Below, one piece after another: positions 2,271 through 64,000 of a stretch of 64,000 bases of DNA. The notes under the pieces were generated by a model, which was not told the DNA's origin, made no database searches, and worked only from the letters and a program-made list of their open reading frames with translations. The DNA lies in assembly GCA_022605425.2 (NCBI GenBank), contig CM061254.1:715688-779687 (forward strand), written 5' to 3'. Made by a program: the position numbers and the translations under genes. This DNA is from Hamiltosporidium tvaerminnensis FI-OER-3-3. Lineage: Eukaryota; Fungi; Microsporidia. Numbering within the stretch: position 1 is the stretch's first letter; the number at the start of each line of letters is the position of its first letter.

Positions 2271-2626
2271 TTACTGTAAATTAAATTTTCAAACATTTAT
2301 AATTTTATATATATCAGTAAAATTTCTGCCAAATTATTCTAAGTCTTTTTTATCATTTGGAATTCCATTATTTGTAAAAATATAATAACTAAGAATGATT
2401 TGATAAATAATAGAAAGATTTTATGTAGTTTCTTTTAATCTACTCGATTTATACTTTTAAACTTCCTGCGTATTTTCAAAAGCCAGTTTTTATTATCGAG
2501 ACGTATGAATATTTTTTTTTTGAAAATTTTTAAACTTGAATATTCTTTCTATCTTTTTATAAAATCGTTAACAATATTTTACTCAATGTTTCTAATTATG
2601 ATTTAATATCGTAGAAAATCTAAAAA

Positions 2627-3352
2627 CTTTATTTAAAAGTATCACATCTTTTTAAAATAGTGGCAAGTGTTATATTTGTTTTTATGACATTAACGCTGTT
2701 CTAGACTTAACATAAATGATTGCTACCCCAACACTCCATCGGTAACCCCTGCGATACCTACGTCCAAAAGCCTTTCATCTAACAGGTGTGTAGAACCTAA
2801 TTAAAAGGCGATGCAGTTACCCAGAGTTAATTAATGTCCGCTACATGAAGTGTGACCGAAAGCCGAAGCCCCCCTGGGCTCCCCCCAAGACTATGCAGCA
2901 TTCCCACTTACTCTACACTTTCTGAACCCAATAAACTTCTAGCTAAGATATATTTCAGAGATTTACATGGGGTCCACCTAGACAGTGCAATGTCATACCA
3001 ACAGGTATAACCTGCTACTTAGCTTTCCTGGCTTTAAATGGTTTTTTGTTTTGTATCTCCCAGGCGCTAAGTCTTCTAACCCGAGTGAGCAAGGCTAGGT
3101 TTCCATGCTTTTACCTGGCAATTACCTAAATTTTCAGCTGCGTTTGCAATCTGGTTACATAAAAAACTACAAATAAATTTGTTGAAAAAGTTTCTCCATT
3201 TCTTAGACCTCTCCTCCTCATAAAAACTCCCATGGAACAACCGAAGATATAGTTGGTTGTATTTCCACCAAAAATCCAAACAATGATCTCACAACAGTTT
3301 CACACACTCATTGCCAAGCAAAAAGTTTTTTATGTGGTTATCCTCCCTCCAC
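2627..3352 (-). mobile_element. Family A element, young full-length copy with 14-bp TSD
   Basis: Highly similar to 16053-16781. Flanked by the direct repeat TAGAAAATCTAAAA at 2612-2625 and 3353-3366. Confidence 0.92.
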
Positions 3353-5486
3353 TAGAAAATCTAAAATAAAAATAATTTTAACAATTTAATTTAAATAAAA
3401 GTTCTGCCAATCGTATTTTTAGATATCAAGGGATATGTTTTAGGTAATTTGACTATTGTGGTTTACTAACCCGATTTTTACTTACAAATAAAATATATAT
3501 AGAATTAGAAAAAAATTTCATAGCTGAAAAAAAATCATGTTGATTATAAATGAGGAATTTTTTTAAAAAATAGACTAAATTTAAAAATATGCACATGCAC
3601 ATTGATTATTTCATATTTTGTTTGGATTTGGTTTTGATATTAAATCGAAATATAATAAATTCAAAAAATATAGAAAGCTTTATATATTTTAGCCTCTTTT
3701 ATATAAATACATATCTCATCATCTTATTTGTTGGTTTTCTTATGGTATAAAGAATCTAATTCCGTATTAATCTTATTTTCATATTGTGAGAAATCAAAGC
3801 AAGGTTAGGATTATAATTCAATCTGTTTTAGTTCTACTGGTATGTAATATTCTTACTGTATGTTTTAATATTCTTTTTTTGTTACTAATCTTTCATTTTA
3901 TATTTTATTTTAATATTTACGTTTTCAAGCTATGGTTTTTGATATATGAGCAACAAATCAAACCAATGAAATAAAAATACAGCTTTTGTGAAACTAAAAA
4001 CAGGAATAATAGCTTGTTTATAAAATTATACACACTGTAGTTATCATAAAGTATTTGAAGTACTCTCAAATGATTATATTTTGTGACATAATAATCTTAA
4101 CTGTAAACACTGTACAATTAATTAGTATATTCCTGCAATTTGATATACTTTAAATATAAATTATAAAATGAACTTTTTATATTTATAATCTAAATATGAG
4201 ATATAACTAAGAAATAATTTTAAACAAGTTTAGTTTGAGTTATATTTTTGTTTGACTTATTTTGGTTTTCATATTCTCGTCTTTTTTAATATTGCTATTT
4301 TGTTTAGCTTTGAATTGATAAATTATTAAAGGTCTTTTTACTTCACATTTCGATTTATATAACACTACACAGAATTTACTTTTTCTCGTTTGAGTTTTAT
4401 ATATTACAGGTGTTTGTGTACCTCATTAATTCGTTTTTTTGATTATATTTTGCGATTTAATCTCTCTTCAGTATATGTAATGGCTGTGATTTTCACCCTG
4501 GTTTATAATATATAAATATACTAGTCTTTAAACATTGTCACTAATGGAGATCTCTATTATAAACTATTATAAAGCTCAAATCAGCCTCTTATGGTATTTT
4601 ATGGGTGTATTATTATAATTTATTGTATAGCCATTGCTATTGCTCTATAAACATTGAAAAACAGAATATTATATCTTTGATTCTACTTCGATGATTTTTT
4701 TTTTCAACAATGTGAAACGAATATTAAAAGTGATTTTGATTTTCATGTATTGTCTAATAAAATTTATTATTTCAAATTGGTATTTTAAAGAAATAAATAT
4801 AAACTTTTATCTATTTTATTTTTAAATCTATATCTACTTCATAATATTCATTGTAAAGGATCTATCGGGATTTAACTTCCCATTCGTTTTGAAAACTTAA
4901 ATTTATATTTAGTCTTGCCTTGACAAAAAAAAGTCTTTGAAATTTATGTTTTATATTCTTATGAAACAACATTTTGAAAAAATCAAAATAAATTAGCATT
5001 CCCTGAAGAATACTTTGATAGCATTTTTTATAAGATAAAGAATATTTAAAAATATAATGAAGTAAAAGGTGGCCTACAAACTAATAAATATATATTCTTA
5101 TTAAAGATAGCATGACATGAATTAGTTTAAATAATATTATATAACTAATATCCTTAATATTATCGTTTTTTCTTATATACATTTTTTATAAATTTTTAAT
5201 TTTACTAAAAAAACATTTAATTTGCAAAAAATGCAGACGGAAATTTAAGATAAACAACTTTATTAAGACTTCGATTCATTAATATTCTTAGAAGCGTTTA
5301 ATTCTGTAAGTTCTTCAAAAACAGAACTTTCATTTTCATTAACTGTAAATATTAGTATTAAAGACATAATTGATAAAGAAAATCCTACAAGAAATAATTC
5401 ATAAGTTTGATACATCAGGGGAGATTACTTTAAATTTTATTTAAATATTTTTCTATAAATATTAAATCTACTATACAGATACAAAA

Positions 5487-57687: not shown

Positions 57688-57719
57688 TTGAGTTATAATG
57701 TTTAGTTTAAAATTATTGA

Positions 57720-60400
57720 TTATGTTTTCTTGCACAGATCCATCGATTACAACATGTATACGCAAATAATTTTGATGTCTTAGCATTGAAAAAAAATCAA
57801 TTATTCCTTATTAAGCCAGAGATTCGGTAAAACTTGGCTATATTAAGAACATCAATCTTCTTTATATCATATTTACATGTAGTTTTATAACCAAAGCCAT
57901 TTAAATCTAAACCTGCTCACAGTAACCAAATCAAATTGTTATAGTCTTGTCTGTCTAGTTAACCAGTAGGTTATTTTTGCTATATCTCACTTGAAATTGA
58001 GCAACATAAGATAAATTTGTTATGGTTTAAGCCTTCCAGTCCCTGTTGAGTCTTATATTCGTTCAAATGCAATCAATTAAAAGCCAAAATCTCATCTCAT
58101 ACTTGGTTTGAAATTCTTAGTATTTATATTTTTTTAATTTGAAGCCAATTTTAAAGTAAAATTATTCATTATAAATATGTCTTAATGCTTATATTATCAA
58201 TTAATATTTTTCGATTCTCATTCACAGTTTTGCTTTGTTTTTTTATTATATTGTTCTTCATTTCCTCGACCTACTAATTCTAATTCAATTCGGTAAGAAA
58301 AATACACATAAAAAATTGTTCTTAATTCCCTAACAAAAATTTACCATTTGCCTCTTCATAATAATGCCGAATATCATGAATTAAACTTTTCCCAGGAAGT
58401 CACTAAAGATATAATATACGATTTAAAAAAAATTAGAATGTTAATCATAGTGATTTACATGGAATAATCAAATGTTGATTCATTCGATGCTTTCTTTACT
58501 TTTGCTTCTATATATGTAATTTATTATTTCAAGTATATAATTATAGATAGCTTTATATAATCACAAACATGATTTTTTATCCTGTTTGTACAAATGGCGG
58601 AAAAAGAAGCTGTTAACCATATTATATTTCTGAAATTAAATTTTAAATGTGTCATTTGCGAAAAGAGTCTCAGATCAGAAAATAAGCAGGTTTATAATCT
58701 TCAGTATCTTGTGATCGCTGGTTTCAGCCTTTATTTTGCATTTTTTTTAAATCCCTAAGAATTGTTACTGAACATTTCATAGGATTGACATATTTTGCAT
58801 AATGTGAACTCATTTACAACATATATCATAACAATCTAAGAAAATTATAAACAAAAAATTTGAAATATAAAAACAAATAAAAAACACAATACAAGTATCT
58901 TAAGTTTGTTTCAAACTTTAGAAACTCTTAATTAAATTTAAATCAATATAATTATTACAAAAAAATTTTGATTTATAAAAAAAAAATAGTTTAATTATCG
59001 AACTATTTTCCTAACATTTTCAAATGGAGGATGAGAATACAATAGTACCCTGAATACTATGTTAAACGTTTCTAAGTTTCAAAACTATACAAAATATTGG
59101 TTTTTATAAGCTTGAATGTTTAATACTGATTCGATTCATGTACCATCAAGCTATTATTTCAACAGAAAATATATATAATATTATTTATGAATTAAACCAA
59201 ATAATAGATTAACGCAATACTGATTTTTATATAATTTTTTTAGTAGGTTTCTGATCGAGAAAAAAAATAAATGCTTTTAATTTGTGTATTATAAAGAGAT
59301 CTATAAATATCAAAGCAGGCTTGCCATTGATTTCTGTTAATTTTCAAAGCATTTTATTGCCTATTCTATACAATAGAAGGGATATTTTTTTAAAACTGTA
59401 GAAATACCGCATAACGTCTGTTGCTAGTAATGTTATCTATTTACCAGAGTTTCAAAGATATAACTTTTTTTAGCGTAAAAAATCGCTTTTTATAATTCTA
59501 AAACACAATAAGTTATTCATTGATCGATCAATTTTACTTTACAACCAAAGTCCATAGAAAATACATATTGAGACTTTTAATTATGTTTAGATATATACAT
59601 AACATTTTTTTAGCATAAATTGATTCCATTTTCTCGATTGCGCGAAATATACCAAAACATATAGATCCACTCATTAAAATTCTTATAATTGATAGGGCGA
59701 ACACATTTATTTAAACAAAAATTAGTTTTTCCAAAGACATATACAATATTTGATGTTGATTTGAAGTCTATGAGGAGAGGGTTAGATACACAAAGAGCAG
59801 GGTTAGGAGTAAGATAGGGAGAAATAGATAATTCGAGATTCTTATTTAGTTTCATATAGAAGCGGCACTATTGTGTTATAAGTCTTTAAATCTAAAAATG
59901 CTTTCTGTATATACCTTTAGGAAATATTCCATCTAAATAGGCAATATTGTCCCGTTATCGAGCTTATTGCCTTAGAGATACTGTAAAACAGGTATTGATG
60001 TTGATACGATTATATATCAACATTTTCATAAGTGAATAAATTCACTTATTAAGGTATATTCGACTGTTTTACGAGATCGAACGAGTTAGTTGTTTACTAC
60101 CCTAGGATTTATGTCAAAACTTATGCAAATAATCTTACATATGCCCTTTAACAAACCATATCAGCGTAGATAGTAAGAGTAAAAGTACATTCAGCTGCGA
60201 ATTTCAAAGTAAGAACGAAATCGTTCAGTATTTGTGGCATGTGTTTCATTGCTTCTACATTAGTATGGTGAAAAAGAGATATATCAAGGGCATTTGAGGA
60301 TTACTACTAAGAGATAGATAATCCCATACCCATAGACAAAGTAAGAGTACCACAGTAGAAGATGCCCCGATATTAAAAATTTAACTATATTTATAGTTTT
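57720..60400 (-). pseudogene. Probable decayed coding sequence(s) in the subtelomere
   Basis: Composition looks more coding-like than the flanks, but only short broken ORFs remain (e.g. 59610-59855). No family recognised. Confidence 0.3.
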
Positions 60401-63263
60401 GAAATTTTTAATATTCAATCATCTTTCTTTATTTATTTTAAGTAGACAAATCGTAATTTTGATAGTATAATCTCTTAACCAACGAACACAATCATAGAAA
60501 TTTTATTTTTTGAATTATAACTACTTGTTTCCATTAATTATAAGACTAAGTTTAAATCCTTTTGCTTTGATATCCATCTAAAAATATATTTAAATATCAA
60601 AATGATAATAATATCTTGTAATTCCCACTAGTATAGATATTTCTTCATTATGTAAATAATTGTTCGTAACTTTATATCTATTTAGCAAAGTAAATATTAA
60701 AAATGATTTAAATTAATTTAGCTTATAGTGAAATATATTTATTAAAGATTCATTCAATCTTTATACCAAATTAAAATATTATCTAAATTATTATTTATTT
60801 GAATTGTTTTTTGTGTGAATCCGTAATGACTCATAAGAAAGTTAAAGATAAAGAAAACCAAAAAAAACATTAATCTAAACATTTATAAAATTGTTGTAAA
60901 TTGTATTTGAATAAGGTAGATAAATTAAAAACATTGAAATTAACAAACAATTAATATAAAAACAGATAATGAAATGTAGTTTTAATTTTGAAGTAGTATA
61001 ATAAGAACAAGATTATCAGTTCGAGACATTTTAATGTACTATACAATTTATTTAAATTTAATTCTTTAGATAATTAGAGTAAACTACAAGATAGGTCAAA
61101 TAAAAATATAAAATAATGGAAAACTAAGTAATATCTTTACAAATATAAAAATTTATGTTTTAAATAGGTCGAATATGAGTTCATAGTTTAAAACGAAATT
61201 CTTATATGAATATATTGAGATGAATCAAGTATCAAGATTCTCTAATATAATTGTATGATTTAGTAAAAATAACTTAATGTCTGTATAAATCTAAATAAAA
61301 GCATTTTATTTCAACGAAGTCAATAGTATTAAATTTTTAAAAAATTTTCTTGAAAGTATTATACGTGAAATTTAAATACCTTTTCAGATTTATATCATTC
61401 TTTTAATTAGCTCTATATTCTTTTTAAACCAACAAGCAATACATATATAATACAAAGCAATTTGCTCAATTTTAGGAAAGGTAACTAATATGAGGTTATA
61501 TGGAAATCCAAAGCTATGTATGAATACCCTATATGATCAAAGTTTCAATCAATATACTGAAGGCTTTTAAAAACAATTTCACAAAATTTAATACGGCCAT
61601 ATTTAGGTCAAACACAACGTATTATGACTAAGATTAAAAAATATTATTTAAAGATAATCATTTAAGGTTTAAATAGTTTAAATAATCTAAATGACCATAA
61701 AAAAGCACTTAATACCTTACGCACAAAAACTTCCAATTATAGTAAATTTTATAAGTTTATTAGACTTAACACTCAAAAATCATAGAAGAAGAGAAAATAC
61801 TTAGTTGTATATTCGAATACAACATATTGATATGAATCAACGAATTTAACGGTAAATGAATATTAAATTAGCATGAAATTAATAAATTGCATAAAAGTAT
61901 AGTAAAATGATAATTTATTCAGAAAAAAGTATTAGTTTACTAAATAAAGACAAGATTAAAATAGCCAGAATTGGTTTATAATTAGAAAAACTGCTGCATG
62001 AGCAACCACTATAACTTGGTAAAGGAATAACAAAAGAAATATGTAAAAAATATAGGAACAATTTAAAACAGAAAATTAGAATAAAAAAACAAGAAATATG
62101 AAAAAAAACATTAAAAATGGAATTAAAATAAGGTTTATCTTAACCGACTCTATACAAGTGAAAATTCAAAACTAAAAAAACATTAATAAAATAAATACCC
62201 AACTAAAATTTTCCACGTAAAAGAATAAAAGTTCGATAATTGTAAATAAAATTTGAAATGGTACAATTTTTTTATGCAAAAAAAGAAATACTTTATCATA
62301 GCAGCTATAAACAATACTAATTTCATATAAAAAATAACATACGAACTATATACTAGTTTATATTATAGAAAAGACTATACAGATTTTATACAAAATATAA
62401 ACTTACGTGACAAAAAAGCAACTAAAATCTACCACTAATGATGTAAAATAACGAGTTTACAATATAAATATATTTTTCTTTAATTAAAAGCCAACATATT
62501 ATAGTTAAACTTAAAAAATATATGATAACAACAAGTAAATTATTTTAAGTATGTAATAAACATACAAATCAAGTTTTTAATATGTTATAAATTTAATTTA
62601 GAACAAAATATATGACTTAATACAGAAGAAGTGACAAAGTTATCAAAAAAATGAATAAAAAAACTTACTAAAATTTATATCCCATGCATATCCCTTTAGC
62701 GAAAGTACATAGTATTCCAAATAATATTTTTTAATAAAACATCTAAATTTTGAATTTTTAAAAAAATTATTGTGTAATGAATTGAATCGAACAACCAAGC
62801 AATATTTGTTGGCGTTATTAATATCACATTTCACACGCCTTATATTGCACTCTTCTGAAACTCAGTAGATAAATAAAATGGAATACAAATTATAAGTAAG
62901 AAAAGTATTTTGTATAAATAAAAACCGTATAGTTTTAAAAAAGAATAATATGTTATGATGGTGAATTCTTAATTGCTTTGTAAAATAAAAGAAACTTTGG
63001 ATATTGAAATTAAAAAAAAAAACAGTGCAGTTTAATAAGATTTATTTCATTAAATAATTAATAGCTCGATAAATGGTACCATACATACCTTTCAAAATCA
63101 GAATAATTTTTTTTTACAATGAACAACAAGATATAAAAGAAAAGATAACTTAAACAAAAATAAGCGGTAAATGAAAATAACAAAACAATATTACAAATTT
63201 ATAATAACAGACTATCTCGGTTTTGGAAAAAAAATATATTTCTGTATAAACTAACACATAGAA

Positions 63264-63600
63264 TAATTTAAAATCATTACCTCTTTTTTACACAGTCATT
63301 AGTATAAATTTTTTTGATGACATTCCCGCAGTTCTGAGTTTAACATATGTGACAGCACCCCCACCACACTATCTGTACCACTTACGATACCCATTATAAG
63401 GCCTTCATTTATAAGGTATATATGATATATTTAATAGGGAAAAGGTTTGCGTAGCGTTTGCCCATATCTGTTACTAAGTTTTGATTGTAGGTAGAACATA
63501 GCTCGAACTTAATCTTTCGAGATTATGCAAAATTTTCACTTACTCTATCCACTCCGAAGCCAATAAATGCTCGCTAAGATATATTTTGATGACTAACACA
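63264..63600 (-). mobile_element. 5'-truncated, diverged family A copy capped by the telomere
   Basis: Colinear with 16055-16395 (atgacatt, cgcagttct, gtttaacata, cgatacc, cacttactcta, ccaataaa, gctaagatatattt). Stops exactly where the telomere starts. Confidence 0.85.
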
Positions 63601-64000
63601 GGGTTAGGGTTAGGGTTAGGGTTAGGGTTAGGGTTAGGGTTAGGGTTAGGGTTAGGGTTAGGGTTAGGGTTAGGGGTTAGGGTTAGGGTTAGGGGTTAGG
63701 GTTAGGGTTAGGGTTAGGGTTAGGGGTTAGGGTTAGGGTTAGGGTTAGGGTTAGGGGTTAGGGGTTAGGGGTTAGGGTTAGGGTTAGGGTTAGGGTTAGG
63801 GTTAGGGTTAGGGTTAGGGTTAAGGGTTAGGGTTAGGGTTAGGGTTAGGGTTAGGGTTAGGGTTAGGGTTAGGGTTAGGGTTAGGGTTAGGGTTAGGGTT
63901 AGGGTTAGGGTTAGGGTTAGGGTTAGGGTTAGGGTTAGGGTTAGGGGTTAGGGTTAGGGTTAGGGTTAGGGTTAGGGTTAGGGTTAGGGTTAGGGTTAGG
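63600..64000 (+). repeat. Telomeric (TTAGGG)n tract
   Basis: About 400 bp of TTAGGG, G-strand running 5'->3' to the window end, with occasional TTAGGGG and one TTAAGGG. Confidence 0.98.

Follow-up and report, generated by a model that had tools for sequence, protein, structure and literature searches.

The window, by which we mean the whole stretch of DNA analysed here, comprises 64,000 nucleotides from the microsporidian Hamiltosporidium tvaerminnensis FI-OER-3-3 and corresponds to positions 715688 to 779687 of contig C9. Since C9 is 779,687 bases long, the end of the window is also the end of the contig, one of 17 in the near-chromosome assembly (21.64 Mb) of this parasite of Daphnia, whose telomere repeat is given as (TTAGGG)n (PMC10542269). 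At the extreme right of the window, a telomere tract of (TTAGGG)n on the plus strand (63602–64000) runs for about 400 nt to the contig end, at the physical end of the molecule, with its G-strand 3' end pointing outward and a few TTAGGGG and TTAAGGG variants among the repeats. The tract begins at 63602 and directly abuts a 5'-truncated copy of a repeat that we call family A (63264–63601, minus strand). This copy itself belongs to a polar subtelomeric repeat block whose distal part, cut short at this end, spans 60355–63601 (plus strand). A preceding sequence-only reading had described a telomere seated directly on a truncated family A copy, and the junction at 63601/63602 agrees with that description.

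The window also holds a 755-aa ORF for a protein O-mannosyltransferase (PMT), 99% identical to a Hamiltosporidium tvaerminnensis protein. Elsewhere in the genome, interstitial TTAGGG arrays are found at C15:1158367–1158592, about 280 kb from the right end of C15, as two near-identical units consisting of GGGTTAGGGTTAGTATTGTTTATGCATGTA followed by TTAGGG repeats.

Family A and its terminal copy

We defined family A from 32 copies and built an nhmmer profile from the same 32. The element is about 773 nt long and sharp at both ends, with a fixed GTGGAGGGAGG at the 5' end and variable tail nucleotides after AAATAAA at the 3' end. Ten copies are flanked by target-site duplications of 10–17 bp. Only short ORFs are present and none is conserved between copies, and a search of the window against Rfam at gathering thresholds gave zero matches, family A included; on these grounds we rejected a coding or known-RNA nature of the element. 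The target-site duplications, the fixed 5' end, the variable 3' tail and the lack of a conserved ORF therefore identify family A as a SINE-like, non-coding, non-autonomous TPRT retroposon. Seven copies lie in the window and make up about 7.8% of its length; the genomic density of the family is 4–8%.

The terminal copy matches profile positions 5 to 346/349 of 773. It keeps the 3' ~340 nt of the element, with the 3' end facing inward at ~63264, while ~427 nt of the 5' part are gone, in good agreement with the inward 3' terminus and the loss of about 400 nt that had been read from the sequence beforehand. No telomere repeat was found in the window proximal to the 3' end of this copy. The sense strand is the window minus strand both here and in copy 2, a full-length member of a young subfamily (2624–3400, minus strand), with which the terminal copy shares only about 63% identity. 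At the position of the junction, the young subfamily carries GGGGT, copy 2 reading ACATGGGGTCC, and the family carries a conserved ACTTAC (TTA).

The subtelomeric block and its paralogs

We searched the genome with window positions 57700–61800 and obtained 40 long paralogs of the segment from ~60355 onward, with 72–95% identity, so that the block has at least 40 paralogs. None of the 40 is more than ~170 kb away from a contig end, and each is oriented towards the end that it lies near; matches on the plus strand occur only near right ends and matches on the minus strand only near left ends. Several copies are present per chromosome end. The last 3.7 kb of the C9 block copy (59856–63600) lack any ORF that reaches 70 aa. 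Subtelomeres go unmentioned in the genome paper, and this block system is not described there (PMC10542269). By alignment, then, the right end of C9 (C9R) belongs to a polar subtelomeric block present in many copies, of which it is one truncated unit. The sequence-only reading had overlooked that the whole end is multi-copy, and the end-pointing block contradicts its statement that no dedicated subtelomere exists.

The closest relatives of the C9 copy show what the missing part looks like. All 1838 nt preceding the telomere are 96.7% identical to C7:936966–938803. Over the last 337 nt, identity reaches 95–98% at six loci (C7:938466, C4:1170471, C6:975737, C5:33841, C16:125820 and C5:119408) and 84% at three more. 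The paralogs on C7, C6, C5, C4 and C16 carry a full family A copy and run 7–126 kb further outward; because these full copies lie that far inside their contigs, it is C9 that has lost distal material relative to them. Overall, full-length family A with an identical proximal flank is present at no fewer than nine internal paralogous loci, and the copies on C7, C6 and C5 (L002, L004 and L005) stay mutually 97% identical for at least 1.5 kb past the position of the C9 junction. Since positional homologues of the terminal family A copy sit in block paralogs that are only 67–72% identical, the copy is, judged from this divergence, an old one.

At the junction itself, seven close paralogs (95–98% identical) with full-length family A read GACTAACACAG/ACCTACTTAGAC, i.e. 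CACAG/ACCTAC, where the slash marks the position at which the C9 telomere starts. With longer context the seven paralogs read GATGACTAACACAG/ACCTACTTAGAC, as against CACAG/GGTTAGGG in C9. The dinucleotide AG at 63600–63601 (plus strand) comprises the sole bases common to these progenitor-like paralogs and to the telomere repeat, and is the putative telomerase seed. The sequence-only reading had instead proposed a GGGT microhomology. Alignment to copy 2 or to the profile does place the first telomeric GGGT on the GGGGT of the young subfamily, and to that extent the observation holds; yet the sequence that was broken had no GGGT, because the seven closer paralogs read CACAG/ACCTAC and copy 2 is only distantly related, and the overlap is AG.

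The block exists in several variants that part company close to the junction. Blocks of the L002 type (C7, C6 and C5:33k) and of the L003 type (C4, C16 and C5:119k) share 93–98% identity up to ~20–50 nt beyond the junction position, after which identity falls to ~55–67% and the distal flanks are unrelated. Around L002:1682–1935, the block-borne family A copy has a mosaic structure: the L010 type diverges from about −155 nt, and L008 switches from L003-like to L010-like sequence at about +95 nt. The switch points are thus spread from about −155 to +95 nt. We read them as ectopic recombination that used the dispersed repeat as homology, and take the mosaic as evidence that the element has undergone such exchange repeatedly.

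Telomere junctions at other chromosome ends

We collected 23 telomere junctions across the genome. Ten of these, eight of them new, are at right ends and were found by three junction patterns with 45–46 nt of context; the census leaves out three telomeres reported by the genome paper, probably C2R, C3R and C12R (L and R denote left and right contig ends). All 23 junctions pass straight into in-phase repeats, and no captured subtelomeric DNA is seen at any of them. In 22 of the 23, the telomeric sequence starts with A, TA or TTA ahead of the first GGG, the sole exception being C4L (C/GGGG). Hardly any register in the set has G as its first letter. The distribution of registers suggests a fixed alignment of chromosome 3' ends on the template of telomerase.

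Four further ends show the same signature as C9R, namely a truncated paralog joined to the telomere at a short seed. At C1L the seed is TA: the end reads AAAAATA/GGGTTAGGG, eight paralogs continue as AAAAATA/TATGAT, and the breakpoint, equivalent to window position 62520, falls in the same block. At C2L the seed is AG, and the end reads ATAAG/GG where C3L, with 98% identity, continues as ATAAG/ATTT (L062 and L063 being the left ends of C2 and C3). C1R (L031) has the seed AGG and reads CTAAAAGG/G, and a C14 paralog (L026, ~1460053) of 99% identity continues as AAGG/AGGAAAAC. C17R (C17:914446) has a single T as its seed and reads CAGGAT/AGGG, as opposed to CAGGAT/CTTT in its C10 paralog (L078, ~11.1 kb). 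Seeds at the five ends, C9R included, are thus 1–3 nt long. As judged from these alignments, the pattern indicates that at least five of the 23 visible ends owe their form to de novo telomere addition at seeds of 1–3 nt, and C9R looks like an ordinary instance of a kind of healing that seems common in this genome. In the left-end sequence of C1 (L061, C1:1–4000), the junction is at ~C1:846, and just inside it lies a ~2.4-kb insertion of other repeats that is flanked by a 24-bp duplication of window positions 62442–62465.

We also asked of this collection whether family A is enriched at ends, as it might be if it were a recurring site of telomere seeding, one of the options that the sequence-only reading had offered. 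Two of the 23 junctions (C9R and C3L) fall in family A, as against 1–2 expected from its density of 4–8%, the right-end junctions having been compared by eye. Among the right-end 45-mers so compared, only C17R resembled family A, and the C10 paralog of that end (L078) has no family A match. Enrichment of family A at telomere junctions is therefore not supported.

The second of the two junctions deserves a closer look. The C3L subtelomere is a diverged (66–78%) but collinear paralog of the C9R block, and the family A copies at the two tips are positional homologues in the same orientation. The telomere caps the C3L copy at profile position 341, compared with ~346 at C9R, no more than 8 nt apart in the element. 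Because the nearest paralogs of C3L (72%; C14L, for example) retain a full family A copy, the truncations at C3L and C9R are independent. We estimate p ~ 0.03 for such a match over the six pairs of block-sharing ends, which makes it a suggestive coincidence. No other of the 23 junctions lies in family A.

These observations bear on whether breakage, recombination or telomere seeding is favoured in the middle of family A, with C9R as one instance of a recurrent process linked to the element. In favour of such a site, the two independent caps lie in homologous copies of the same orientation, the boundary between L002-type and L003-type variants falls ~20–50 nt distal of the junction, and the spot carries the conserved ACTTAC (TTA) of the family and the GGGGT of the young subfamily. 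On the other hand, the C9R lineage has no GGGT, two of 23 junctions is what the density of the element predicts, the coincidence reaches only p ~ 0.03 once the six end pairs are allowed for, and the mosaic switches are spread over some −155 to +95 nt instead of converging on a single site. Single-stranded DNA at the junction folds no better than shuffled sequence (z = 0.71), and inverted repeats are weak only, so a fragile hairpin at this position was rejected. Taken together, we consider a preferred site of this kind unlikely. A somewhat broader version, to which we give slightly more but still little credence, takes the central ~60 nt of the old family A copy, just outside its most conserved core, as a preferred point of both termination and exchange in H. 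tvaerminnensis subtelomeres: near the junction lie the two telomere additions, within 8 nt of each other, and the block-variant switch 20–50 nt away, and at least six ends (C9R, C3L, C1L, C2L, C1R and C17R) are truncated block copies, which would suggest that microsporidian chromosome ends undergo a continual turnover of breaking and healing.

Probable chromosome healing and its alternatives

The reading that we favour, and regard as probable, is that the right end of C9 arose by terminal deletion of an end-pointing copy of the subtelomeric block followed by de novo telomere addition. A break, or erosion of the end, would have removed everything distal to the mid-point of the old, block-borne family A retroposon. 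The AG that closes the resulting 3' end, CACAG, would have base-paired with the template of telomerase, which would then have added GGTTAGGG and further repeats de novo, i.e. by chromosome healing. Consistent with this, C9 is collinear up to the junction with seven paralogs that go on as ACCTAC for at least 1.5 kb; the seed consists of AG alone, the paralogs having no TTAGGG at the site; and in-phase telomere repeats run from the junction to the contig end. The earlier preference for healing of an old copy is supported in that the copy is old and is full-length in internal paralogs that run past the junction. The event itself appears to be recent. Family A is a passenger at C9R, which neither transposed to the end nor supplied a GGGT seed.

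The genome also encodes a likely candidate for the enzyme. An open frame of 911 aa contains a Telomerase_RBD match of 72 bits (C4:420294–420659, minus strand) and is probably a TERT gene; the match bears on the presence of the gene only. The two-nucleotide overlap is by itself weak evidence. In AT-rich DNA such as this, roughly 40% of random sites would show an overlap of that length by chance. Overlaps of 1–3 nt are, moreover, also typical of microhomology-mediated joining, and sequence alone cannot separate the two routes, which leaves room for capture of an existing telomere by microhomology-mediated end joining or by template switching to another telomere. What speaks against capture is the whole set of junctions: at none of the 23 does captured subtelomeric DNA separate the chromosome from the in-phase repeats, and in 22 the first GGG is preceded by A, TA or TTA, in keeping with alignment on a telomerase template. 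A TERT candidate is also present. We thus consider capture very improbable and infer that telomerase made the cap at C9R.

A further concern is the assembly, for which PacBio CLR and ONT assemblies were merged, extended and manually curated (PMC10542269). A healed end that belongs to a near-identical C7-type paralog, or that comes from minority nuclei or a chimeric read, could have been attached to C9 through the shared block. In line with this, identity to the C7 paralog (L002) jumps at ~62224: the terminal 1.38 kb (62224–63601, plus strand) are 97–100% identical to it in 115-nt windows, and the proximal 460 nt (61764–62223) only 83–93%. In addition, compared with six close paralogs, C9 has nine private letters, of which those at 62933 and 63107 are homopolymer insertions and the others lie at 62200, 62958, 63115, 63299, 63326, 63358 and 63513. 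We compared these with short-read (Logan) contigs of four runs, in which 63592–63650 is masked as repeat, and found the paralog state at eight of the nine, both homopolymer insertions included, 62200 not being listed there. The private letters may be leftover errors of the long-read consensus, in a repeat beyond the reach of short-read polishing. The contigs have to be read with care, however: an AA variant at 63530–63531 that is common to C7 and C9 is also missing from them in three of the four runs, so minority repeat variants are dropped and absence from the contigs is weak evidence. The four other ends with the same structure also argue for biology and not for a one-off artefact. On balance we regard a chimeric or mis-assigned end as unlikely, and even then the junction would represent a real healing event somewhere in the genome. 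For users of the assembly, the last 1.4 kb of C9 are best flagged for a check of paralog mis-joining.

The orientation of the terminal copy invites comparison with elements that make up chromosome ends. HeT-A and TART of Drosophila and the Athena elements of bdelloids join chromosome ends through retroposition, build up terminal arrays there and show enrichment at telomeres; their 3' ends face inward and their 5' ends outward, with telomeric repeats on the truncated 5' end. The C9R copy has this arrangement, as would be expected if family A RNA had been reverse-transcribed onto the end, 5'-truncated and capped by telomerase. In sharp contrast to those elements, it shows no retroposed attachment, no terminal array and no telomere enrichment: its 3' flank is the flank seen in internal paralogs and not a former chromosome end, no telomeric repeat lies proximal to the 3' end, the copy is single with no head-to-tail array, and the target-site duplications of family A copies elsewhere are of the ordinary kind. 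Since at least nine internal paralogous loci hold the same copy at full length with the same proximal flank, terminal transposition, which the sequence-only reading had entertained, is excluded for this copy, and we attach practically no credence to it. We also rejected the reverse polarity, in which an ancient end with an ancestrally truncated copy was extended by break-induced replication and the full copies are derived. Blocks of the L002 type, the L003 type and L008 share 20 identical bases past the junction, no dispersed donor of >75% identity was found for either 5' half, and the nearest paralogs of C3L keep a full copy.

Telomere addition to a truncated subtelomere, as we propose for C9R, has close counterparts in two other eukaryotes. 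In Pyricularia (Magnaporthe) oryzae, which has the same TTAGGG repeat, 19 of 24 new telomeres extend seeds of 1–4 nt (Rahnama et al. 2020, PMC7367193), compared with 1–3 nt at the five Hamiltosporidium ends, and telomeres are likewise found on truncated subterminal sequences and on 5'-truncated retroelements (PMC7367193). The two systems differ in that the MoTeRs of P. oryzae are telomere-targeted retrotransposons that destabilise the ends, whereas family A, a dispersed retroposon, is flanked by target-site duplications of the usual sort. The events in P. oryzae were also followed in real time, whereas those in Hamiltosporidium are deduced from a single assembly. In Plasmodium falciparum, five of the 28 reference ends have telomere repeats fused directly to a truncated subtelomere (Calhoun et al. 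2017, PMC5550746), and healing competes there with homologous repair among paralogous ends (PMC5550746). The resemblance extends to an AT-rich parasite genome with multi-copy subtelomeres and healed subtelomeric breaks (PMC5550746). On the other hand, P. falciparum has another telomere repeat, its truncations fall in var genes and not in a non-coding unit as at C9R, and its events were verified by SMRT reads and by induced breaks, whereas C9R is known from the assembled sequence.

The right end of C9 is accordingly to be seen not as unique DNA with a curious element at its tip, but as one truncated unit of a large, polar subtelomeric system. The repair logic at the chromosome ends of this large-genome microsporidian would then be the same as that in Plasmodium and in the blast fungus.
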